The notes under the pieces are model-generated. The model made no database searches. It was not told the DNA's origin and was given only the letters and a program-made list of their open reading frames with translations. The position numbers and the translations under genes are program-made. A stretch of 64,000 bases of DNA from Hyaloraphidium curvatum SAG 235-1 (Eukaryota; Fungi; Monoblepharomycota). The stretch lies in the NCBI GenBank assembly GCA_025558095.1, contig JAIVFI010000036.1, positions 62,001 to 126,000 on the forward strand. Direction: 5' to 3'. Positions 2,388 through 47,467 of the stretch are shown here, in pieces. The first letter of the stretch is position 1, and each line of letters opens with the position of its first letter.

Positions 2388-3081
2388 AGCTGGGCGCCGG
2401 AGGGGGAGGGGGCTTGGGCGGGAACCGAAAACGCCATCCATCATCTTTGGGAGAAGGAGGACGAAGAACGTAGTTATGTACTGAATTGGACGCTGGAAGG
2501 AGCACAAGATGGCCTGTCGGGACTCGCGCTCCTCGCAGTGATGCTTCTCGGCCGGGCGTCCGAGTGTTTTCGATCGTGACGTCTGGTCACCGTAGGAGAT
2601 TGCCATCTGGTCCGCAGTGTCCAACCTCTTGAAACTGCTCTTCCTCGATGGGATATGTGGATTCACAGCTCGATTTCAACAAGTGCGACGAAGGCGTCGA
2701 GCACGTCGTCGCGGCGTGATTGGTCGTGCGTCCCCGGCCGCTGGGGCGGGGGACCAGACTGGAACCGCATATGTCTTGCATGCCACGCTCAGGTACTTCG
2801 TACCGTTCGTACGATGCCTCGCCAGAAAGGCGGCGCGGACTCTGTTGGACGCCCGCGGCGATCGGGGACGCCTGCGCAGGCGGTGACGGCTGGGGAGGGC
2901 TTGGACGCGGGAGGACTTCGGTATCGCAGCACACGGCCACGAAGGGGCCGGGCCGATGAGCGCGATGGACATGCTGAGCGCGCGATGCGCAAGCGGAGGC
3001 GGGCAGTGGTCGTATGGATGGATAGCGCCATCGGGCGCAGTGCGGGCGTACATGTAGTCGGATCCTTCGGGCCGGCCCTCT

Positions 3082-4201
3082 AGGGCCCCCCTGACCCCGT
3101 TGCTGCTATCCCATCGCCAATATGTCCAAACAGACGCCCGCAAAGGCTCAAATTTTCGAAATATAGGCCGTACAGGTTGATATAGGCTGATATAGGCCGA
3201 TATATAGGGGGACCAAGGCCGCGAGCAGCAGAGGGGGCAAAGGGTGCCATAGGCTGGAATAGGCCGCTATAGGCCGGCAAAGGACGATAAACGACGGCAA
3301 AAGACGACACATGAGGACAAAATGAACGATTCTGGAGCGTTTTCAAAGAGCTGTTTACGTGGGTGTGTTGCCGGTGGAGACATTCGGCCGAGCCCGGCCG
3401 ACCCGGGTCGGCGGTCCCGCCGGCTGTCCGCCTCATCGCGGCGGCGGCCCGCAGAGCGCATGTACGGCAAAACAGGTCTAGGCGAGGAGCGCCGTGGAGC
3501 GCAGATTGTCGCAGGAAGTTGGACCGATGTGCTGAGTTTGCGCGACTCGCGCGCGGGAGCGGAGTTCGACGCGCGTTCGGAGTTCGCGTCGCTCAATTCC
3601 CACCGGGTAACGCGGAAACCATGGAGCTGCGCCGGTCCTTCCACGCAACGCGTGCTGGTGCAGAGCGCTTTTAGGTTGGAGGATCGCGGCGTTCAGTTCT
3701 GGCCACCTCCTGGAGTTAGCCGGACCTCCCGCCCAACGCCGGGTCGACATTCCTGGTCTACATTCCTTGTCCACATCCCATTACCCTGGGCACTCTCCGG
3801 TAGAAAAAGACGGAAAACATCAGGTAGAAAACGCCTTGCGAGGCGCGTCGCGCCCTCGCGGGAGCGGTAGGAATGGGTGGTTCGGACTTCGGACATTCGT
3901 TACCAACCGGCAACATTTGCCGCGAGAAGTCCGATGAGCGAGACCGGTCCCCGGACGTTGGAGAATGCTCGTAGAACCATTTTGGATTGTAAAGGTGTAA
4001 TATAGGCAGATATAGGCAGCCATAGGCGCCATAGGCCGGCAAAGGGGGTCCAAAGGGCACCAAGGGCGGAACAGGCCGGCATCGGGAAATCCCGCGAGCG
4101 GTCGATATACGCAGCCATAGGCGGTCATAGGCGGGCCATAGGCTTGACATAGGATGCCATTGGGCCACAGGGGATAGCAGCAACGGAGTCAGGGGGGCCC
4201 T
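3082..4201. mobile_element. Non-autonomous TIR DNA transposon (MITE-like), 1120 bp
   Basis: 31-bp TIRs at 3082-3112 and 4171-4201 (30/31 identical, AGGGCCCCCCTGAC[C/T]CCGTTGCTGCTATCCC); flanking direct repeat CCTCT at 3077-3081 and 4202-4206; no credible ORF; subterminal ATAGGC arrays. Confidence 0.9.
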
Positions 4202-4590
4202 CCTCTCCATCGAGCAATCGAGATACTGCCCTGCAGACGTAGCGTCGCCGTCATCCTGAGCACCCCTACCCGAGGTGGGAGGCTGCGTCGCCATCAGACG
4301 CCGCATCGAGGCCGCTCCTGGGTCCTAAATCCAGGCGGTGGCAGCGCTCCGACGATCTGACGCTCCACGAAAACTAAGGATCGCCGGCGTGGTTTGCGTG
4401 ACTTCTGCTCACTCTTGTCTCGCTTCACCAAATGGTTGGGAAGTGCGCCCTGCAAGCTTCAAAGCAGACCTTGCGATACAGGATCAAAGCCAACGATCCG
4501 GGCATCACCGCAGCGGGCGGCAACCGCGGGGGCGCACTCCGCGGAACCCCCGCCACGGCGCCTCGCCCCGCCCTTCTCCCGCCCGCGGAG

Positions 4591-5667
4591 CTAGGAGTCC
4601 GAAGTCGGCGGCGGCGGCTCCGCCGTGGGCTGCCACTCCCCGATCGCCGGGGGCTCCGGCGGTTCCGGCAGCCCGGCGAGGGCCCGCCACGCGGCGTGCT
4701 CCGGGCCGCTGCCCTCGATGTCGACGATCGATACCTTTCCCACGCGTTCCCTGACGGAGGCAATGACGCGGACGAAGGCGGTGTCGGGGATGCAGGGGCG
4801 GAGGTCGCGGAGCTCCAGCAGTTCGGCGCGCGGGATGCCGCGGAGCAGGGCTGCGGTGGGCAGGCGGCGGAGGGCCAACCTCCTGAACCGCGACCGGAGG
4901 AGCGCATCCCACAGATGGTCCGGCACCGTTTCCGCGGCGCCGCAGAAATGCAGCTCCAGGTCCTCGGGCGGAAAGTCCGGATGGTCGGCCAGCGCCTCCG
5001 GGACGGCCCCCGCCCGCGCGCGGAGGCGGCAGAGCTTCTCCACGAGACGCGGGTGGTTCCCGACAAGCTGGCCGAGGAAGAACCCCAGCGTGCCCTCGTG
5101 GGGCGACAGCAAGAGCTCCAGCGTCTCGAGCCGCGGGCACCCCCGGTCGATCCTGTCCAGCACCTCGGGGGAGGGATCAAAGGCCTGCGAATCGATCATC
5201 TCGATGGAAACGCGCCGCAGCGAGGGCGGCAGCTCCATCCCGTTGAGAAACCCCGTGCCGGGCCCGTCGTCGCAGAGCACCTCGAGGTCCTCCAGGCCCT
5301 CCAGCGGGGCGAGACACCCGCGGTCCGGGAGCAGCCTGCCGTACGCCAGCCGGATCCGCAGCTTCCTCGTCGCCGTCGCAAGGCGGAGGCACGTCCCGGC
5401 GTGGGTCCGCCCGAGCATGCCGCCGAGGTCGAGCTCCCTGACCATCCGCGCGAGGCGCGGGTTGGCCAGCGCGCGCTCCAGGGCGGGGAAGTGAGGCCGG
5501 GCGGGGCGCAGCGTGCGCAGCAGGACGGGCATCGCGGCGGCGTGCAGGGCGCGGCACGCGGCGGCGCAGCGGGCGAGGTCGCGCGGGCGCAGGTGGCGGA
5601 GGACGGCGGGGAGCAGCTCGGCGGGGAGCGTCGCGAGCGTGGGCGGCGGAGGCTCCGCGGCGGGCAT
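4591..5667 (-). CDS. F-box protein with leucine-rich repeat-like region
   Basis: LATLPAELLPAVLRHLRPRDLARCAAACRAL F-box motif; LxxLxL repeats downstream. Confidence 0.75.
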   Translation of the reverse strand: MPAAEPPPPTLATLPAELLPAVLRHLRPRDLARCAAACRALHAAAMPVLLRTLRPARPHFPALERALANPRLARMVRELDLGGMLGRTHAGTCLRLATATRKLRIRLAYGRLLPDRGCLAPLEGLEDLEVLCDDGPGTGFLNGMELPPSLRRVSIEMIDSQAFDPSPEVLDRIDRGCPRLETLELLLSPHEGTLGFFLGQLVGNHPRLVEKLCRLRARAGAVPEALADHPDFPPEDLELHFCGAAETVPDHLWDALLRSRFRRLALRRLPTAALLRGIPRAELLELRDLRPCIPDTAFVRVIASVRERVGKVSIVDIEGSGPEHAAWRALAGLPEPPEPPAIGEWQPTAEPPPPTSDS

Positions 5668-34435: not shown

Positions 34436-36184
34436 GTGTCAAAGTCAGCGATCATCGTCGGCCGCGATGGGCAGCCCGTGGACCTCGATGGCCTTTACTC
34501 TCGTTTTGTGCGGCGCTTCCGCGAACGGATCGCGGTGGCCTGGGCTCTTGGCGTCGCGGCCCACCTCCAACACTGGCTTCAGCTGTGCACCGAAGCCGCC
34601 GCTGTCAACGCTCCGGCCCCCGCGCCGGTCGCTTTTGGTTTGAATGTAGATGAGGAGCTGATTCTTGGGGCGTAGGGGGATTTCTACGGTGGGATTGCTA
34701 GCTCCTCATTACATACAGTCAGCGATTGTCAAACGCCGATCTGATCGCGGCTCTCAAGTCGCGGAGCCGCCGATGTGCGGCCCTGGGCGAGATGGCGCGC
34801 GCCAGCAAGTACTCTCGTGCGGTTCTCGCCGTCGAGGGCCACGACAGCCAGATCACGCGCATCGAGCACCTGCGCGACGCCGACATACCACCGAACGACA
34901 TCTACATCGAGCTGGGCGACGTGCTGGGGGGCGCCGCGCCGGTCAACGTGGTGCAGCCGTCCACGGGGGAGAAGGAAACCGCCCGCAAGGCCGCCGCCCG
35001 CCGCAATGTGCTCAAAGTGCTCCATTCTGCGTCGACCGCGGGATACCTGCGGAAGAAGGCCGCCATCGAGCGTGCTAGGCCGCCGAACCAGCATGTCAAA
35101 CCCCGGCACCTGGAGGACGCGGTGGAGAATCTGGTTTCGGGGGGATGCCTCAGGAAGGAGAAAAAGGGGCAGAGCGGCTGCCTCTACTGACCGATTCGTC
35201 TCCTTCCGTGACTTCGCCCGGCCTTTCCGCCCGCGCTCTATCATTCTCCTCCGATGAGGGCTCGGAGGACAAAGAAGAGGAAAGCGAAGACGAGAACAGG
35301 ACGAGGTCATTCCCCTTGCGGACGATGACGACGACGTGGTCATCTTCAGCGAGGGCCCCACATCGCCCGTCAAGCCCGCGCGTCACGAAGGTGACGGTAG
35401 CGACCCCCGCTCGCCCATCCGAGCTTCGGAGCCCCCTCAACCCGCCACGGGCCCGGCAGACGGAGCACCCGGCCCGGCGGATCCCGTGCAACCCCCGACG
35501 ACCAGCGACGAGGAACTCGCGCGGATCCTGCAGGAGCAGGAATACGTGGCGCACGACTGGCCCGTTCCGGCGTTGAACCCGCTCGTTCGCCCTTACATCA
35601 ACCCGCTTTCGTTGTTCAATCCGTTCCTACCACCCCCAACGCCCGGCGCTCGGCCCCAAGCGGCATTGGCATTCGCTCCCAGACACGTGGGGACGGGGTC
35701 GCCCCGCAAGCCCGGGCCGGCAAGAGGGAAGGGCAAGGAGCGGCGGCCGTCGGGCGCCGCGGCTTCTCCGCCGCCTTCCGCGGACCCTGCTCCGGCTGAT
35801 CCTCCTGACCCGCTCGAGGATGCCCAAGAACCGGATCAACCCGAACAGCAGCAGGTTCCAGATCAGCAGCAGGCACCCGAACCGCAGCCGGCGCCCGCAC
35901 AGCAGCAGGCACCGCTCAAGCCCGATCCCGCCCCCATACCGGCACCCGCAGCACCCTCCTCCATCGCGGAACCCTCGATCGTCGTCAAGTCCGACCCCGC
36001 GATCAAGCCCGACCCCGCGATCAAGCCCGACCCCGCGATCAAGGCGGAACCTGCACCGTTCCCGGCTGCTCCCGTCGTGCTGATCCTCGACGGCCCGGTG
36101 CCGGATGCCGAGCCGCTCCTCGTGAAGCAGGATGTCAAGGTGGAGGTGAAGCGGGAGAGGGAGCTGTTCGTGATCGACGATTGA
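34436..36184 (+). CDS. Hypothetical nuclear protein with UIM-like motif, SUMO-consensus array and SIM-like motifs; exon structure and start uncertain
   Basis: Three consecutive + ORFs separated by intron-like gaps; SDEELARILQEQE; (DPAIKP)x3; C-terminal LFVIDD. Confidence 0.5.
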
Positions 36185-36852: not shown

Positions 36853-36942
36853 ATGAGGGCGCGCGCCGATCAACATGTCAACAAAGCTGCCTAGTCGCAC
36901 ACATCGCCTCTGCTACTAGCTGTTTCCGCCGGCAGCGCCCCA

Positions 36943-38050
36943 ATGCCAGTGGCCTTGGCATCTCCATCTGCAAACTCTGCGCCTCGGGCTTCTTCACAAC
37001 TACCTGTGCCCCGGACGCCAATGTTGGTGGACGGCCCCGCCATCGCAACTCGGCTCAAGCAGACTGGGAAGCTGAGCTCGGCGGAGATTTCTGCGTCGTT
37101 GGGAGTACATCGCACGACCTATTTTCGTTGGATCAAGTGGGCATCGCTGCCCCCGGCATCGAGAGAGGGAGTTCGCAAGGTCCGGAGCCGCCGCAAGGTC
37201 ACGGACCAGATGGTCCAGGACATCGTACACGAGGCAAAAAGCCAGGTCAGGGTCACCCAGCAGGAGCTAGTTCTTTTTCTGGCAGAAAAGTACGGGATCC
37301 GCGTCTCCCAGCAGCACGTTTCGCGGCTGCTGAAGGCAAATGGCGTCACTAGGAAGAGGCTCACCGTCAAGTCTTCCGAGGCCTTACGGCAACCGGAAAG
37401 GCATCTTCTGTTTCATAGTCGCATCGAGAATGTGCCTATGGAACGCATGGTCGCACTGGACGAAACGGCTTTCGAGCTCAACGACCCGGGCAGCCACGGG
37501 TACTCGGACCGCGGAAGCCGCGCTGTTGTCTACCTCCCGCGGAATAGAGGTCCAAAGGTGACTCTGTGTCTCGCAGTGTCACCAAGTCCTCGTCCGGGAG
37601 CAGTTGCTGGAACGGTGATCTCGTATGTGATCTACCGTGGCAATATGAACACGGAGCGATTCTGCGCTTTCTTGAGGTCTGTTAAGGCAGACGGACAGGG
37701 CCCCAAGAACGCGCTGAACATTGTGATTGACAATGCTGGTTACCATGGATCCCCTTTGAGGGCAAAGAAGACCGCAAATGGTACTGCGATTGTAGAGAAC
37801 ACCTCCGGCAAATCGTTCCTCGCGGTTCAGGCGGTGGCGAAAGCCAACAACCTCAACCTCGTGTACCTGCGACCCCGTACTCCCGAGTTCAATGCGAGTG
37901 AGCACGTGATAGGGCGGTTGAAGCGCCTTGTCCGGCGAGACTGTCCCTCCACTGTGGCCGATCTGATTGACGCTGTCGAGAGGGCGATACGAATTGTTGG
38001 GGAGAGCGATCTCTGTCCCACTTTTCGGCACTGCATCAAGCTCAGCGCGG
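36943..38050 (+). other. IS630/Tc1-like transposase module (two HTH + DDE_3)
   Basis: ISASLGVHRTTYFRW, GIRVSQQHVSRLLKANGVTRK; ALDET (D at 37459), IDNAGYH (D at 37729), TPEFNASE (E at 37900). Confidence 0.92.
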
Positions 38051-41000
38051 AAGAGAAGGCGCGCATTCAGCGGGAGATGCTTCGGTCCGACAACCTTGGT
38101 TCCACGAGCGGGTGCATACAACCGGAAACGGCAACTGGCGAGATCACGGGAGACACAAACTCGACCCGCATGGACACCGGACCGGGTCCCGGGGCCGCGC
38201 CCAGGAACGCGGTGGACGACGGCATCGCTGCTCGAGAAGCGGCCCGCCTGCTGCAGGAGGTGGGGAACTCGTCGCCGTCGTCATTGACGCGTGCCGACCT
38301 CCGTTTGACTTCCCAGGCCCGGGAACTCGGAGTGGCCGAGGTCGACGTCCACAAGGCCTACGATGTGAACCAGCTCTATGGCCGACTACGAGGACTCAGT
38401 AATGGAGGTGCTTTCGGATCGGCGTGGAACACGTTTCTGGACGAGCTGCAGAACGCCCGCGCCACCGCCTCCAAGGACGTCATCGGCACCCTCACCTCCC
38501 TCCCTCCCGACCAGTTCCGCGGAATATGCTCCGCAGTCGAGAAAGGCAAAGGCAAGGAGGTCCGCGCGGCCCTCTGCCGGAAGCTGCGGAACTTCGTCGA
38601 GCGACGTCGGCTCCCCGCGCCCGTCGCCGACGAACCATCGCCGGCCACCGCGGGCACCCCTTCCGGCCTCTCGCCGCCTCCGCCGCTCTTTCCAACTGTT
38701 TTAGCGAACCCGATTTTCGCTCCAGCCGTTGTCGGAGCCCCGGGGGCGCAGCTGGACGCTCTGCTGGACTACGCTCTGGAGCCGACCGTGCCCAAGGACC
38801 TGCGTGAGGCTGTCAAGTACGCGTGCTGTGCCGGGCTTTCCGACCTGGACCAGGGTCGTCCGGACGGCAGTTACTCGTCCCTCTCCGCGACGAGGAAGGA
38901 ACGACTTTTTGTCTCGCGCCTGGTGGCGGTCGACCGTGAAGGAGGCTTCCACCGCTGGACGGCAGCGACCGAGATCCGTCTGCGTGGGCGGCTGATGGCG
39001 AGTGATGCGGCTCGTTTGGATGATTTCGTCCATTCCGTATTCCTTGCTCGAGTGCGGCACTTCGTTCGCCAGCCGGAAGCCGGGCTCATACCCGTGGAGG
39101 ACTTCGAGCTCCCAGCCCAGACCCACCTCCGCCGGCCGCAGAACTGGCGCAAGATCCTGGAGGACGCCCTCGGCGCGCTCAAGAACGCGTCCGGGAAAGC
39201 CCTGTGGGATCGGAGGAGTCGTTCGCTCGAGGTTGCGCTCGCCAGCCTGACTCTGGAAGAGCGCATGGCGCTCGTTGTCCGCACGGACTTGCCCAAGGAC
39301 ATTGCCTTTCAGCAGGCTGAACAGCGCCGCATCTTCTTCGAAACCTTCCTCTGGGGCCCCATGAAGGCCAACGAGGCGCTCCTGGGCATACCGGATCGTG
39401 GTCCGGTGCCCGCGCTGGTGAGCAACGTTCTGGCTTCCAGCTCCAGCATTCTGGGCTGACGGTGCACTCCTCGCAGCCGCTGACCTTCTACGAGATCTTC
39501 CAGCCCACGAAGGGGCTAAGAGGCGTGAGCGAAAGGGCGGACGCGGACCTCGGCTCGTTCTTCGACAAGGCTTTGGCTGCTGTGCACGGAGAGGAGGGGC
39601 GCTCGGTCCTGTTTGAGTTGATCTTTTCTGGCCACCCGATGCGCGACCATTTGCTGGACTATTGGGGGTTCGATTCGCTCGTGAACCCTGTCAGCGACGC
39701 CGCCCGTCGCGCGAGCGTCGCGTTCCACCTGAAGTTGGACGCGCTCGAAAAGGCCTTTGACGCCAAGCGCGTCGACATCTGTTCCCTCGGATGCCTTTAT
39801 TGTCCCTTCACAGTGGCGGTCGAGGGCCGGGTGCCGGCTCGGAACCCGGAGCGGAAGAGAAAGGACGCGAACGGCGCTACGGCCGGCAAGTCGTCGGATC
39901 AGCGCCAGTACGACGCTGGCGTGCGGCTCGGGCATCACGTCGCGGGGAAGCACTTTACGTGCCAGATCTGCCGCAAAGACGGCAGGCGTGTCACGTTTGC
40001 GTTCGAGGCCAAGTACCGGGAACACGTGGAAACCCAGCATGCAGATGCTCCTCTCCAGTAGGTCTCCGCAAGAGATCCACACGGGGTCATTACTCATCCT
40101 CGCTGTCCCAGCCTCGTCATCCCCCGGGCCTTCACATCACGGCGCGGACTGCTGCTCGCCCAGGTCAACTACATTGTGCCGCACGCCTGCCGCACTCAAG
40201 CAACGGAAGCGGAGAGTGCTGCCGCCGGAGCAACGGCGATGGACGTAGACGGGGCGAAGGACGAAGGTTGCGCGGCAAAGGAGCCCAGGTGCCACCTCTG
40301 CCTGTCGACAACCCGGGGACACCGGCGAGGATGCCGGCCGGCTTTGCGGCAAGCTGCGGAGAATGCGTACAAGGCCGTCGGGGATGCGGAGCACGAGCGG
40401 CACGTGACCGAGCGCGCCATGTCGACAACCTGGTTCTTGCCCGAGGAGGCCCTCCACCCCTGGGCGATCGAGCCGCTCAAGAGCGTGGGGCTGCTCATTT
40501 CCCGCGCCGCAACCGGTGCGGCGTCCTTTGCAAAGCTCGTCTGGACCTCGGCGATGCTGGCAGTATACAACGGTCTGCTGGACAACCGCTCCGTTCCCCC
40601 TGCCATCCTGCGCAAGTTCCCACCTTCCGTCGTAGCGAACATGGCGATGCTGGTGGTTTTGAACGAGGGGGCGCTAAACGCCAACGCAGGCACACGCCGG
40701 AGGAAGAAGCCGCGCGGGGACATCGGCACGGATCCGGGCGTGGAGATCACCGCAACTGGCGCGGGACTCGGCACGGTCACGGAAATGGCGGAGGACGATG
40801 ACGAGCCCGCTGCCGAAGATGGGGAAGAAGAAGAGGAGGGCGGAGATTTCGGTGAATACGCCGGGTTCGCGGACTTCCTGGCCGGCGAGGGGGAAGCCGA
40901 CGGACCTGAACACGCGCTGGAAGCTCTGGGCGCCGGCTTCGGTGGCGACGGGATGGCCGACGACGGCGAGGTTTTTGACGGTCCCGGCACCCTCTCCGTG

Positions 41001-44000
41001 GAGGAGCATAACGCGGCGGCTGCGGTTCTGCGGGCGGTAGTCACCGACGCCTACCACGAGCTGAGGCCGGACCTGGCTTCCGAGTTTGCCGACTGGCACC
41101 ACTACCTGCTGCGCGGCCCGCTGCTCGGTTACTTCAGGAATCTTGCCGCAGGACGCCTCCGCACCGTCCCCATCCAGCTGCGCAAGGAGCTTTCGGACCT
41201 GATCCGCACCTTCCTGAAGGAGGAGCTGGACAACGCCGTGAAGCGGCAAAAGATTGGCCACATCTTGCGCTGCGTGCTGGCCAAGCTCGGGACGGGTGAT
41301 ACGAACTTTTTCGGCACCAGCTTCGCGGCCTTTGGCTGCAGCCCCGAGTTTGACGCGGAGGCTCGGCTTCGCCTGACCTGGCTACTCCTGCCGCTATCCG
41401 GACGCTCGCTGAATACGATCATGGACCTGCGGGAGCCCCGCGACCGGCCAAAATGGCCAGCGACTGTCCTACAGCGCGTGATGCTTTCGCTGAGGAAGCG
41501 GGACGTGGAGCTGAAGCGGTCGGCGATGGCGACGCGTATCCGCAGCGTCGCCATATCGCCGCAGAAGGCGCGCGGCAAGTCGCAGGACGAGGAGGACGCA
41601 AAGGCGGCGTACCTGCTGGATCTGCGCGACCGGGCCCAAGCCGAACTCCGCCGGATGCCGCCTGAAGCGATCAGGCAACTGCAGGAGGAGGAGCGGCACG
41701 AACTGGTCGAGACGTATGTGGCTGACAAGCTGCAGTTGCGTGGCATCCCCGTCGAGATCCCCTCCGTGCAGGGGGTTGGCATCCACCCCACAAAGAGCCG
41801 CTTTTGGGGGCCGGAGTGGACGGAGGGCCTGGACAAGGAGGCGCTGTTGCAGCGCTACGAGAGGGAGCTGCTCGATGAGAGGCAGAGGGCGCGTCAGCTG
41901 AGCACAGCTGAACTTCGCCTCGCGCAGACGGGCAAATGCGCGGACGCGGACGCGTTTGGCTCCGAGGCTCTCTTTCAGACTATGCGGCTGCGGGAGGAGC
42001 AGATCGCGAGGCTCAAGATGCGGCGATCGTCAAGCGTTGCCTCGACCGGATCTGAACCAAGCCCGACGGCCTTGCCGCAAAGCTCGACACCGACACCTTC
42101 ATCATCGAGTGCGGCGGACAGCGCTCGGCGCGTCGCCGCCAGCTTCACCACCGAGGCCGCAATGGACGTTGACCCTGCGAACGAGGCGGAGGGTGGTGGA
42201 CCCTCTGCGACTCTGTTCCGCGGAAGTGCCGCCGTGGACCTGCTTTGCGCGGACATGGAGTGCTCCGACTCGGAAGACGGCAATGTTGAGGCTGCTGACG
42301 ACTTCCCCACGATCGGCGGCGGGAAGCAGAAGTCGAAAAAGGGCCGACCGATCCGAGTGGACCCCAAGCCGTGGCCGAAGAACGGGGCACCCAAGCGATT
42401 CCATGGCTACGTCACGACGGGGAAGAAGCGGGCGCCGCTGTCGCCCGAGGGCAAGGTGAAGAAGCGATTGGGGAAGTCACGTGTGGCGGCTCGCCGATGG
42501 TCCAGCGCGGCCGGAGGGAGCGGGGAGAAGAGCGTGGGTGACGCGTTCTCTCCCGTGGTGAGGTCGTCATTCTGATACGTTTCATGAACAACAGCAGTCA
42601 AGGACCCAAGGCGGCACCACCGGAGGGACCTGGGCCGCGGGCGGGATCCGGCCGCTCTTGACCAGGATTTCCCTCACCCCCATAGCCCTGTACATAACCG
42701 CGAGCGATCTGCCCGACCTCTTCAAGATGCTCGGTGTTAAGCTCGGCCCCTTGGCACCGGACGTGGCCAAGATCAACCCCGATTACCTGTTTGGACACCT
42801 GTTCAACAATGGCAACAAAATTGTTCAGGACGAGCGTCTTTTCCGCCTCCATCAGGAGGGGAAGCGCTCCCCGGCAGGGCACGCGGACGCCTCACGGCCG
42901 ACCCTTCGCCGGTCGGGCGATGCGCTGCACTGCTCGTGCATTGCTGGCATGGTTCTTCGTGGCCCAACCTTTGCCATTGTCGAGGAGCACATGGCCGTCG
43001 TGCCCAGGGCTTCGAAGCCGAAGGCACCGCAGCAGCAGTGGACGGAATCTGAGCCCAAAGTGACGCCGCCCTTGGATTGTAGGTCCCCGTTCTTTCATCG
43101 GAGCTTCCGCGCCTAACCTGCTTCCCAACAGTCTTCCTCAGCGCGCCATCGCCCGAGCCGTGTTGGGAGTGTACGGAGCCAGAACAGCACGCCCACTGGC
43201 ACGACTTTTCGGCCCAAGATTCGTTCGGGATGCCCGCGGTCCTCGTGCCCACCCTTCCGCACGGTGCTCCGGACCCCCCGCCGGGCATGGCCGTCGTTGA
43301 TGGTATGTCATCCTTGCCGCTGCACTCAGCGCTGCTGATGTGTTCATCTTCAAGCTCACGGCTGGCTCCATGCTGGCGGGACCGTCTTCTTCCCCCCGCC
43401 CGCCATTACCGACGATGCCGAGCACTTGCTGGTAGATCCCGACTCGACTCCTTTCACGTGGATGGACGTGGATCAGGATTGGATCGGGCTCCCGCCTCCC
43501 GCCTCCATCCCCCCCGAACCCCCACCCGCAACATCACCGAACTCCTCCACATCGGTACCTTCCGAGTCTCCATCCTCCTTCACTCCCACCCTCGCTCCTC
43601 CGCCTCCTCTTCCCATCCCGACGGCCTCGCCTGTGGGTGCCGCAGGATCTTCTCCGCTTCCGCCCTCGTCTCCACCTGCCCCTGCTCAGCCTCCAACCTC
43701 CGCTCCTCTCCCACCGCACCCTCGCTCTACGTGCTCATCGATACCTCGTCCGCCTGTTGACTGGAAGACCTCTATACCGTGCTACAACTTTAGCCGGAAG
43801 GCGGACGCGGAGAAGCTAATGCCGCACTTCCTAACAATGGCAACGGAAGAGGAGATGTGGGATGCCGCCCAACGGGGCCTTCCCGTTTCTGGTGGCGTTG
43901 TCTTTTGCGATCCAAATCGCTGGTTCTATATGCAGGGCGGTCGACGACTTGCACCCGCGTTTGTGGCCCGCTGCCTGGACCCCGGCCCGGGGAGACGGTT

Positions 44001-45524
44001 CGACTTCGCCAACACCCACCTACCCGAGCTTTCGGAGAAGATCGTCGTCACCAACCCGGACGGCACCACATCGACATACATTCTTGTGCGCGCCAACGTG
44101 CCCAAGGGGTGCATCTCTGCGGGCCGCATCAAGGACATCCGGCTCGAACACTCCTGCGACGAGACGGCCCGCGTTGCGCGGGCGACGCAGGCGGCGCCGC
44201 GCAACATCCGCTGCCGACACCACCCGGACGGCGCCGCCAAGCTCTCGGCTCACCGCCCGACCAACCGCGGGCATGCGAACCGCGACGAGAAGCTGCGGAA
44301 GGCCGAACGGAACTGGACGCTTTTCCCCAACCCCGACGGCGGGTCCGATGCCGACGGGGACAGGTTCTGGGGTGGTATCGCCGGCTTTGGGCGCGCCGGC
44401 GTCCGCCAGCTTCCGGAGCTCATTCTCGGCGTGCCTGGGGACCTCGATCGCCGGATGTGTGGTTACCAGCACGCTTCTAGGAAACTGGCGTCGCTGCGCA
44501 AGTCGCACACCCTCCCCTCCGGCCTGACAATCGAGGCTTGGGAATCGGCACTGCCTTCGCAGCGGACGACGAGCTGCGAGCAGTTTCGCAAGTACGCCCA
44601 TGCCATCACGAAGGAGCTCTGCTCCGTCGTCAAGTTCTACTGCAATGATGAGATATGGTTTGTTCACGGCCAGCCTGCGTGATTGGGATGCAGCCTTCCT
44701 GACGCCTTCTTTTGCAGCCGCGACCGCGTCCGTACCATCCGGAGGCGTCGGCAGGTGCTCGACTGGATCGCCCGCGACCTGTGTCGCAACCCGTACTCGG
44801 GCAAGTTCGATTCCCAGACCACCTTCGCCTATGGCGCCGCCCGCTTTGGTCACGCAAGCAAGGGCGGTCCGGCTTCTCGGATTGTGCAGTTCAGGGCCGC
44901 GCTCGCGGCCGTTGGAATCCTCGTTTTGATCAACGAGTACCTGACGAGCCAGATGTGTTCAAAGTGAGTTTTCCCTCGTACTTCGCGCCTGATTTCGCGG
45001 CATTGATCGCCCTCTCGGCAGGTGCCTGACGACCTACGTTGTCCCCATCACCAACCCCGGGTGCCGTGGCGAGATCCGGGGCGCCAAGTACTGCCCGACC
45101 TGTCGCACGTACTGGATGAGGGACGTCAACAGCTGTCGGTCCATCGGGTACCTGTTCTGGTTCGCGATCGCTACCGGTGGCGAGCGCCCCTGGCCGTTCA
45201 AGCCTGACACCAGGAGGCGCAAGCCGTCGAAGCCGGCCGCGAAGTCCGCTGGTACGCTGATTTTGCTCGCTTTGGAGCGTGTGAGCTGATGGCGTTGCAG
45301 GCACCACTCTTCAGACCGGATCCGTTCCCACCGTGCCCAAGCGTCCTGGTGCGGTGGCGCGGGGACGCGGCTCTGCCAAGAAGGTCAGGCTGGACGGCCC
45401 CGGCCGTGGGTCTTCTTATCTTTCTTCTCTACAAATTGGCGGGTGGTGCGAGCCCTCGCCTGTGCCCGATTGTGGGCTTGATCGAGGTGGAGTCCGAGAG
45501 GACCGCCTTTTTGGTGGCAAGTAG
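36943..45524 (+). CDS. Predicted single ~2,711-aa transposase / zinc-finger / Fanzor1 fusion protein, 9 exons
   Basis: Introns 39418-39476, 40058-40111, 42534-42594, 43079-43131, 43303-43354, 44658-44717, 44964-45021, 45252-45300. All are GT-AG and 49-61 nt, and each splice links adjacent ORFs in frame. Exon total is 8136 nt. Confidence 0.75.
43960..45210 (+). other. Fanzor1/TnpB RuvC + Zn-ribbon nuclease module (split by 2 introns)
   Basis: RCLDPG (RuvC-I, D at 43978); KFY...RRRRQVLDWIARDL bridge helix; FAYGAARFGHASKGGP; INEYLTSQMCSKC (RuvC-II, E at 44935); YCPTC..YWMRDVNSCRSI (RuvC-III, D at 45122); GERPWPF. Confidence 0.9.
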
Positions 45525-45559
45525 CATTCCATATGTGTGTAGCCACCCATTTGGAGACT
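45428..45559 (+). ncRNA. Candidate Fanzor omega-RNA (scaffold plus adjacent guide)
   Basis: Directly 3' of the RuvC exons and at the element end; hairpins GTCC-GAGA-GGAC and GCCC-GATTGT-GGGC; long-range pairing CAAAT/GGGTGG with CCACCC/ATTTG. Confidence 0.55.
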
Positions 45560-45565
45560 GCCGCC

Positions 45566-47467
45566 ATGGCCATGACGGCACCGGGCCTCGCTTCCGCCCT
45601 CCTGAGGACTGTGTTGCGGACTTCACCTTGCTATTCTTCTCCTGCACGGACATTCGCTGCCTCTGCTGCCGCCCGGGACGGGGCAGCCTCGGGCGGACCG
45701 CCGCCGGAACGCTTCGACGCCGACAACGTCCACAACATCTACCTCCCCCTGTCGGCGTTCCTCGCGAACGATCCCGTCCCTTGGCAGCGCCGCAACCGCC
45801 CGTCGATGGCGGTGCTGGGCCACGACTCGTGGCACGAACCCGTGGCGCTCCAACCGCTGCAGCCCAACAAGATGCCGCCGGTGCCCAAGCAGTACTACGG
45901 CGCGCTGCCGACGGATACGGCACAGCAGTTTGCGCAGCTGAGGGTGCTGCTGAGGACGAGGGGCGATCCGGCGCTGGCGTGGGCGCTGTTCCGGTTCGCG
46001 ACGGAGAGCGAGGGCCGCGCTTCGTACGCGGCCCGGAAGCGCCGCCCGAAACCCGGCGATCCTTCCTCGGCGGATGACGCGGGCCACGCAACGAGCACGG
46101 CGGCCGAACGGGCCCGCTCGCCGGCCACGAGCCTCCAGCCCGACGACCGCACCGGCATGCTCGAACTCCTCCTCCTGCACCCCAACCCCCTCTTTGCCGT
46201 CCTCGCCGCCATGTGGGTCATGGCCTGCCCCGCCTACGCCCCCGTCGGCGATTCCTCCACCCCCGTGCCGCTGGACCGCCGCGACCTGCGGCTGCTCCTG
46301 TCCGTGCTCGCGAGGGGGGCGCAGCCGGACTACGCGCGCTACGTGTACGCGAAGCATTTCATCGGGCCCGAGGACGAGGAGGGGGCGGCATCGCGGTCGG
46401 TGCAGGCAAAGGGGAAGGCCAAGCCCGACCTGGTGGCCGCAAAGGCGGTGCTTGCTGCAATGGTGGACGGCGACCTGCGCCGCGCGGAGGGGCACGAGGA
46501 GCTGGACGCACCCAAGCGCTCCAAGTGGCTCGCTGAAACGGGGTTCTCCCGCGACTCCGAGTTCGACGGCGTCCTCGGCTGGTGGTCGTGGATGTGCGGG
46601 GACCTCGACGCGGCGCTGTCGGAATCCACCGCGGACCAGGGCAGCGGTTCGCCCGCCGCCCGCCGGCAGAAGCTGTGGCGCCAAGGAGACGGCGAAACCT
46701 GGGCGCTCCTCCTGACCTGGCTGGCCAGAACGGACCGCCGCACGGCGTCCCGCATCTGGGACTTCCTCCGCCTCCCCGGGCCCGAAGGCGACGGATGGCG
46801 GGACCGCCTCCTCCGCGACCGCCGCGTGTGGGAATCCGCCTTCCCGCTGTACCTCCAGCCGACATCCACGCAGTCTGCCCTCGCCGACGCCGCCCTCGCC
46901 TTCCTCGAGGAGATGCTCCCGCGGTGCCCCCCCGCCGAAACCACGCACGACGCGATCCTCTGCGGCATCGTCGACGCCACCCTCGCGTCGGCGGAGAAGG
47001 GCGCCAGGGAGGGCGTGCAGGCCGCCGAGTGGGCGTGGCGGGAGCTCGTCCTGCGTCCGCTCGTGCCCGGCGGGCCGGTGAGGCCGTTCCACAGCTCCGG
47101 CGAGGCGATGCTCAGGTTGTACGACCGCTATTCTGCCTCGGCGGCGGATGCGGAGCTGGAGGAATGCGCCGGGCGCGCGTGGGAGGTCTGGCAATTGATG
47201 GACGGGGAGCTGCGGCTCAAGCCGACGCTCGAGGCCGTCAACCGCGCTCATGCGGTGCTGCGAAGGGCGGCGAGGAGGCTCGGGGGGGAGGTGTGGCCGG
47301 GGAGGAGGGACGAGGTGGAGGCGATGCGGAAGGCGCTGGTGCTGAGGAGGGCCAAGGAGGAGGACAGGGAGGTGGAGCGGGCGAGGAGGCGGGATGGGGG
47401 TGGGAGGGGGGCTAGGCGGTATTCGGGGGCGGATGGAGGGGCAGGGCGGGGTGGACAGCGATATTGA
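45566..47467 (+). CDS. Hypothetical helical-repeat (PPR-like) protein, possibly mitochondrial
   Basis: Arg/Ser/Ala-rich presequence-like N-terminus; DGETWALLL, AWEVWQLM...LKPTLEAVN PPR-like segments. Confidence 0.5.
   Translation: MAMTAPGLASALLRTVLRTSPCYSSPARTFAASAAARDGAASGGPPPERFDADNVHNIYLPLSAFLANDPVPWQRRNRPSMAVLGHDSWHEPVALQPLQPNKMPPVPKQYYGALPTDTAQQFAQLRVLLRTRGDPALAWALFRFATESEGRASYAARKRRPKPGDPSSADDAGHATSTAAERARSPATSLQPDDRTGMLELLLLHPNPLFAVLAAMWVMACPAYAPVGDSSTPVPLDRRDLRLLLSVLARGAQPDYARYVYAKHFIGPEDEEGAASRSVQAKGKAKPDLVAAKAVLAAMVDGDLRRAEGHEELDAPKRSKWLAETGFSRDSEFDGVLGWWSWMCGDLDAALSESTADQGSGSPAARRQKLWRQGDGETWALLLTWLARTDRRTASRIWDFLRLPGPEGDGWRDRLLRDRRVWESAFPLYLQPTSTQSALADAALAFLEEMLPRCPPAETTHDAILCGIVDATLASAEKGAREGVQAAEWAWRELVLRPLVPGGPVRPFHSSGEAMLRLYDRYSASAADAELEECAGRAWEVWQLMDGELRLKPTLEAVNRAHAVLRRAARRLGGEVWPGRRDEVEAMRKALVLRRAKEEDREVERARRRDGGGRGARRYSGADGGAGRGGQRY

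Follow-up and report, generated by a model that had tools for sequence, protein, structure and literature searches.

Does the right end of a Fanzor-bearing transposon in the fungus Hyaloraphidium curvatum SAG 235-1 specify an RNA partner for the nuclease encoded beside it and, if so, where would the scaffold of that RNA end and its guide begin? The locus lies in a 64,000-nt window (contig JAIVFI010000036.1, positions 62,001 to 126,000, here C36:62001-126000; coordinates below are window positions unless a locus is given) of a 31.9-Mb genome with ~65% G+C. An earlier interpretation of the window, hereafter the sequence-only reading, had proposed an omega-RNA scaffold and guide at 45428-45577. 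Our analysis identifies 45430-45545 as a non-coding module at the right end of a transposon that carries a DDE transposase and a Fanzor, and probably as the scaffold of an omega-RNA (Fanzor RNA, fRNA) of that Fanzor. The evidence for such a scaffold is architectural and comparative.

The limits of the element follow from an alignment of its genomic copies, which places its main parts as follows:

36892-45545, plus strand: family-1 transposon, 8,654 bp, termini TAG...CCA, five copies
36943-39459, plus strand: open reading frame (ORF) with DDE_3 (IS630/Tc1-type) transposase and helix-turn-helix domains (PF13358, E = 3.4e-12, 46.9 bits)
45516-45545, plus strand: imperfect terminal inverted repeat of the right end (match to the left end at 19 of 31 positions in a hand alignment), which would form the 3' portion of the scaffold
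45546-45547, strandless: right copy of the CC target-site duplication, the left copy being 36890-36891

Five near-identical copies of this transposon (contigs C36, C25, C4, C16 and C5), here termed family 1, are separated by 16 single-base differences (15 single-nucleotide polymorphisms and a 1-nt insertion in the C4 copy), none of which lies past 44010. All five are identical up to 45545 and unrelated from 45546 on, and the left edge of identity falls at 36892/36893. This alignment, which the sequence-only reading had suggested as a check, locates the conservation boundary at 45545 and thereby displaces both scaffold ends put forward earlier (45539 and 45557); the two guides proposed to start at 45540 and 45558 are equally wrong, as copy-specific sequence begins at 45546. 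The broader placement was correct: the region does terminate a transposon present in several copies, on its right side, and lies where a true TnpB/Fanzor-type gene has its 3' end. Comparison of left and right flanks revealed matching dinucleotides at four of the five family-1 copies and at nine of the ten copies of a second, related family (family 2, below), which shows a 2-bp target-site duplication. The DDE_3 transposase and the imperfect inverted repeats of ~30 nt that contain the termini are features of Tc1/mariner-IS630 elements.

Downstream in the same element and on the same strand lies a spliced nuclease gene, whose exons are:

43426-44657, plus strand: Fanzor exon with the RuvC-I motif FCDPNR (spliced contig, tblastn to paralogues; 43426 is not a mapped exon boundary)
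44718-44963, plus strand: Fanzor exon ending in LINEYLTSQMCSK, with the RuvC-II Glu and the first zinc-ribbon Cys (spliced contig, family alignment)
45022-45251, plus strand: Fanzor exon that completes the zinc ribbon (CPTC) and carries RuvC-III as RDVNSCRSIGYLFWF (spliced contig, homology, family alignment)
45301-45524, plus strand: last Fanzor exon, a basic stretch resembling a nuclear localization signal (NLS) and then a tail of 45 codons that crosses the candidate scaffold and closes with TAG at 45522-45524

In a 2018 transcriptome (run X1, kept as contigs) the gene is represented by a 1,905-nt spliced contig with a depth of ~2,800, which lacks all three GT..AG introns (44658-44717, 44964-45021 and 45252-45300) and bears out the earlier statement that the last exon reads through the candidate region and stops within the inverted repeat. 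Read across the junctions, the protein contains FCDPNR (RuvC-I), LINEYLTSQMCSK|CLTT...CPTC and RDVNSCRSIGYLFWF (RuvC-III), with the RuvC-II Glu directly upstream of a CxxC...CxxC ribbon; the string N-E-YLTSQM-C-SK-C, continuous only across a spliced-out intron, matches the Fanzor motif of a Glu near the zinc ribbon. The three introns, together with the basic stretch PKRPGAVARGRGSAKKVRLD, NLS-like by inspection only, correspond to the eukaryotic adaptation seen in Fanzors.

Homology searches were run exon by exon, the exons never being joined into one protein. Searches of single family-1 exons against Pfam, NCBIfam and the PDB gave no useful match, nor did a word-based protein search with 43780-44679 find any. 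By tblastn, matches of the exons to same-genome paralogues and to a homologue in a Logan assembly span E values from 1e-5 to 4e-28, with the RuvC-I exon matching paralogues L156 and L158 at 3.9e-28 and 5.5e-23 and the RuvC-III exon reaching 4e-12 at best (paralogues and Logan contig L168). Two of these relatives, L156 and L168, exceed the cut-off of PF07282 (Cas12f1-like TNB) at 32.2 and 35.9 bits, while family 2 stays below it at 20 bits. A profile of the family matches PDB structures with E values down to 1e-6 overall, namely LaTranC (1.1e-6), the mimivirus TnpB-like protein L79 (2.1e-6) and Guillardia Fanzor1 (0.003), in addition to Cas12m, TnpB and Cas12f. Only three relatives were recovered in a full HMMER search of 1.84 billion representative proteins; one equals L158, and the contigs of the others (L167 and L168) stop before any 3' region and thus add no lineages for covariation. 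Since relatives pass PF07282, the profile matches TnpB, Fanzor and Cas12 structures and the family alignments retain DPNR, NEY-x5-CxxC...CxxC and RDVN in full, the gene is a divergent Fanzor/TnpB whose membership follows by transitive homology.

What follows the catalytic exons is a compact series of conserved and structured segments:

45430-45441, plus strand: conserved block A, TACAAATTGGCG, likely the 5' edge of the scaffold
45438-45460, plus strand: stem-loop 1, 9 bp with one bulge and a GCGA loop, basal GGCG/CGCC conserved
45464-45477, plus strand: stem-loop 2, GCCC-GATTGT-GGGC, specific to family 1 and not found in family 2
45485-45512, plus strand: stem-loop 3 (AGGUG-GA-GUCC GAGA GGAC-CGCCU), then U5, all nine pairs identical in family 2

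The three local hairpins are recovered by RNAfold, and those named by the sequence-only reading occur exactly where it had placed them (GTCC-GAGA-GGAC at 45492-45503, extended by AGGTG/CGCCT at 45485-89/45504-08, and GCCC-GATTGT-GGGC at 45464-77); stem-loop 3 itself occupies 45485-45508, with the GAGA loop, and is followed by the U5 run. Its description of the region as unusually self-complementary applies to part of it. From 45429 to the U-run at 45512 (84 nt) the folding z-score is -2.27, with 5 of 300 shuffles folding as well, and the equivalent family-2 stretch scores -2.30, but the whole in-element stretch 45429-45545 is unremarkable at z = -1.08. The 130-nt version proposed earlier (45428-45557) reaches z = -2.58, and a 150-nt version -1.75, yet the former value relies on a closing stem built with flanking DNA. 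The motifs of that stem (TCT, CAAAT and GGGTGG against CCACCC, ATTTG and AGA) are indeed present at their coordinates, but the 3' arm from 45546 to 45557 is flank and differs in the other four copies, and the alternative pairing of GGTGGC with GCCACC fails likewise in that it needs flank bases C45546 and C45547. Pairing between flank and scaffold was at chance level in 14 of 15 copies, and the lone outlier, L015 (3 of 300 shuffles), is about what chance would yield in 15 tests. A closing helix inside the element may instead be formed by CUACA (45429-33) and UGUAG (45538-42) in family 1 and by AGUUACA and UGUAGCU in family 2, with pairing probabilities of ~0.2 and ~0.99 respectively; as it is invariant between the families it is unproven.

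Comparison with family 2 shows which of these segments are conserved. This family comprises ten copies of ~8.6 kb that are ~72% identical to family 1 over the RuvC exons (loci of the two families: L011-L020, L163-L166 and L169-L174; 15 copies in all). Past the coding sequence, alignment between the families is poor except in islands. Block A reads TACAAATTGGCG in family 1 and TACAAGTTGGCG in family 2, with 11 of 12 positions identical, both families have the GGCG/CGCC base of stem-loop 1, and the arms and flanks of stem-loop 3 (GCTTGATCGAGGTGGAGTCCG ... GGACCGCCTTTT) are identical at 33 of 33 bases. The stem-loop 3 loop differs by an indel change (GAGA in family 1, GTCAG in family 2), the U-run is U5 in family 1 and U4 in family 2, and in family 2 an additional ~55 nt, which include another hairpin, separate the U-run from the inverted repeat, the distance from stem-loop 3 to the repeat being ~85 nt there and ~4 nt in family 1. 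In an alignment fitted to a covariance model, three pairs of stem-loop 1 are changed on both sides in family 2 (G.U to U.G, G-C to C-G and G-C to A-U) and one is broken.

Under the same splice pattern the family-2 stop codon lies ~20 nt before block A, which shows that the conservation of the island is not protein-coding; the two main helices (stem-loops 1 and 3) are kept at the nucleotide level in family 2, outside its reading frame, which supports the sequence-only reading. The family-1 frame runs on for 45 unconserved codons to the TAG at 45522-45524, and its protein exceeds the family-2 end (L011:2118-2193) by these 45 codons, past a shared basic KK(V/L)(R/K) stretch. The family-1 scaffold overlaps the last 31 codons of this unconserved C-terminal tail and the family-2 scaffold lies entirely in the 3' untranslated region (UTR), and the tail has the look of translation running without constraint through the RNA module.

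When a covariance model was trained solely on family 1, it recovered all family-2 copies, at 41.6-42 bits, with no further match genome-wide, and the exact stem-loop 3 arm pattern occurs at exactly 15 genomic sites, all inside full elements. By both methods there are no solo copies in the whole genome, and the short 'ghost' copies suggested as material for a covariation test by the sequence-only reading do not exist. Matches to the stem-loop 3 arms in metagenomes (at least 120 stretches) were rejected, since their flanks look like chance and most lie on contigs unrelated to the element; the pattern is too short to be specific in metagenomes.

The region is transcribed, with the transcript running on into the flank. 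The assembly graph branches at 45545, at which point the spliced contig stops, and 31-mers spanning 45516-45546 have depths of 550 for copies continuing with C and 330 for those continuing with G. Further contigs lead on from 45517, at depth 119 into the C36 flank and at depth 852 into that of C25. None of the aligned run-X1 contigs retains an intron, which makes carry-over of DNA an unlikely source of the junction contigs.

Several results weigh against interpreting this module as an omega-RNA scaffold. The fold of the whole in-element stretch is, as noted, ordinary, and an Rfam search returned only noise and no match. The contigs do not resolve a discrete small RNA or its 5' and 3' ends, nor can they distinguish an extension that serves as guide from read-through of the mRNA or from the 5' UTR of the neighbouring gene. 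Covariation, also suggested earlier as a check, is borne out by the three compensated pairs of stem-loop 1 and not by stem-loop 3, all nine pairs of which are invariant; the covariation score is reached by 20 of 500 shuffles, and with only two independent lineages the statistics are weak. Seven other Fanzor-like loci, paralogues in this genome among them, are without the RNA motif according to the covariance model, and the left flanks of the insertion sites share no motif, such that no target-adjacent motif (TAM) can be proposed.

The alternative that best survives these data is that the Fanzor mRNA has, in its conserved stem-loops, a 3'-UTR element acting in 3'-end formation, stability or translation, with the hairpin and U-run serving as a termination or processing signal and no guide being involved. 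We consider this possible but doubtful. A GC-rich hairpin ahead of a U-run (U5, or U4 in family 2) does resemble such a signal, depth drops from ~2,800 in the transcript body to ~880 at the junction 31-mers, and the transcript evidence consists of contigs without a discrete small RNA; about one third of the depth nonetheless still crosses the element end, and block A and stem-loop 1, which a terminator would not need, are conserved too. Poly-U stretches also occur in published Fanzor scaffolds (PMC10530073), and for a Fanzor whose catalytic motifs are intact, this is exactly where an RNA partner would be expected.

It is unlikely that the island acts instead as a DNA-level site, for example a sub-terminal site bound by the transposase or a host factor during right-end transposition. 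Against such a role, a counterpart of stem-loop 3 near the left end, inverted or direct, was not found by blastn, the spacing to the inverted repeat is not kept between the families, and stem-loop 1 keeps its pairing while its sequence changes, even though the location of the island 8-30 nt inside the right inverted repeat and the invariance of the stem sequence, beyond mere pairing, would suit a binding site. That the conservation stems from the protein's C-terminal tail or from chance, with folds ordinary for 65% G+C, is very improbable despite the family-1 frame covering the region and a full in-element z similar to that of coding controls, given that the family-2 frame ends upstream and largely excludes such an origin, that the loop indel would shift the frame, and that 33 of 33 identical bases are very unlikely at a background of ~72% (0.72^33 ~ 2e-5).

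Under the favoured omega-RNA reading, the sequence of events would begin with the spliced Fanzor transcript, which runs through stem-loop 1, stem-loop 3 and its U-run and then across the right inverted repeat (30 nt) as far as the flank. Trimming would leave a ~116-nt scaffold whose 3' extension, short and specific to each copy, starts at 45546 or 45548, and the nuclease would bind this RNA and be guided by the extension to DNA with the same flank sequence, such as the vacated insertion site. The guide step is proposed by analogy with SpuFz1, other characterised Fanzors and TnpB, and yields one further predicted feature:

45546-45565, plus strand: predicted guide, the first copy-specific sequence, whose junction with the element is crossed by RNA contigs; guides of known systems are 11-21 nt

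If the RNA works like known Fanzor omega-RNAs, the first guide base would be 45546, or 45548 should the target duplication count as scaffold (CC|CATTTGGAGACTGCC...). From either position it would not reach the start codon of the neighbouring gene (ATG, 45566-45568) unless 19-21 nt or longer, contrary to the suggestion of the sequence-only reading that a guide could cover it. That gene has the same orientation, its ATG lying 20 nt past the right end of the element, and an in-frame ATG is present at 45533 within the right inverted repeat. One transcript contig joins the element end to the gene, and the insertion may feed read-through transcription into it.

The 2-bp duplication without fixed sequence and the lack of a conserved motif at the insertion sites lead to a further, improbable reading, namely that the guide RNA cannot take its TAM from the transposon target site, unlike in TnpB and characterised Fanzors. 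In that event the nuclease would need a very relaxed TAM or would recognise the excision footprint, that is, the terminal bases left at the donor site, which if true would be a different logic for telling vacated from occupied sites. The indels that recur just inside the left end in either family could reflect activity of this kind.

These indels form the sole hot spot in otherwise near-identical 8.6-kb copies, at 36924-36944 just inside the left inverted repeat, and the same hot spot occurs in family 2 (L163-L166 and L169-L174) ~14-35 nt inside the end. Among the changes are an insertion of 9 nt, a deletion of 15 nt split into gaps of 9 and 6 nt, deletions of 5-20 nt and one of ~150 nt. The terminal dinucleotide of the left end is variable too (TA or TC in family 2). 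A TA target-site duplication, as would be expected of Tc1/mariner-IS630 elements, was ruled out by the variable 2-bp duplications of both families (CC, CT, CG, GG, TG, AC, AT, GC and AG), which thus combine a DDE_3 (IS630/Tc1-like) transposase with non-TA duplications, unlike their superfamily.

Observations beyond the module concern a paralogue, a second RNA data set and a repeat. The paralogue L156 (G000:C2:394554-399694), one of the relatives exceeding the PF07282 cut-off, has an intronless Fanzor-like ORF of 686 aa (2680-4740, minus strand); its 3' end region (stop codon and ~200 nt downstream) is single-copy and adjoins a different repeat family ~200 nt past the stop, and no stem-loop 1 or 3 motif was found in the downstream region. 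Two 151-nt records from RNA sequencing of a mud metagenome in 2023 (run X2) are identical to the element at 44844-44994 and 45039-45189, one of them covering part of intron 2 and thus representing unspliced RNA or DNA; they hint at the habitat of the organism. Outside the element, a repeat of ~265 bp at 34454-34718 with at least 35 copies of 95-98% identity on many contigs may be a MITE-like (miniature inverted-repeat transposable element) or SINE-like (short interspersed nuclear element) sequence.

If the omega-RNA reading is true, the locus adds a naturally expressed, recently mobile Fanzor system of a very isolated protein lineage. The mechanism itself would not be new, the system being of a known kind, but fifteen near-identical copies at different sites would form a ready set of 15 natural guide/target pairs, with which the still open question of what Fanzors do for DDE-type transposons could be tested, and the corrected element boundary supplies scaffold and guide coordinates for experiments.

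The layout of the candidate RNA agrees with that of published Fanzor RNAs (PMC10432273, PMC10530073, PMC13565253). Known Fanzor RNAs derive from the 3' region adjoining the right end, span the inverted repeat, and can include poly-U stretches and part of the coding sequence up to and including the stop codon (PMC10432273, PMC10530073). They reach 14-15 nt into the flank in SpuFz1, and native guides as a whole measure 11-21 nt (PMC10432273, PMC10530073); solved structures assign the 3' target duplication to the scaffold (PMC13565253). The candidate at 45430-45545 likewise lies on the nuclease strand, overlaps the 3' end of a gene whose last exon extends to 45524, adjoins the right end of the transposon and overlaps the right inverted repeat. 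Its sequence and structure are conserved in five identical copies and in family 2, representing two lineages only.

In the omega-RNA of ISDra2 TnpB (reRNA), too, a right-end scaffold overlaps the 3' end of the nuclease gene and the first flank bases form the guide. Here, by contrast, the gene is eukaryotic and spliced, the transposon has inverted repeats and a target duplication, and no target-site motif fit for a TAM was found. Also comparable are the fRNAs of CrFNuc-1 and KnFNuc from green algae and those of Mariner/Tc1-associated Fanzors (PMC10530073), which are also 3'-UTR RNAs that adjoin the right end and overlap the inverted repeat; as here, the elements are multicopy and encode an intron-containing, NLS-bearing nuclease. 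No sequence or Rfam similarity was found, the ~20 extra solo RNA copies of C. reinhardtii have no equivalent in this genome, and the target duplication is 2 bp and variable rather than TA. Relative to the omega-RNA of SpuFz1, the Fanzor1 of Spizellomyces punctatus (PMC10432273), the candidate scaffold is longer (~116 nt, or ~170 nt in family 2, against 75 nt), a DDE transposase is encoded as well in its 8.65-kb host element, and similarity between the proteins is remote (profile E ~1 to 8GKH). The SpuFz1 RNA and the candidate both span the right inverted repeat of a multicopy element, are conserved among copies, may overlap the stop codon and run on into variable flank, which in SpuFz1 is the guide.

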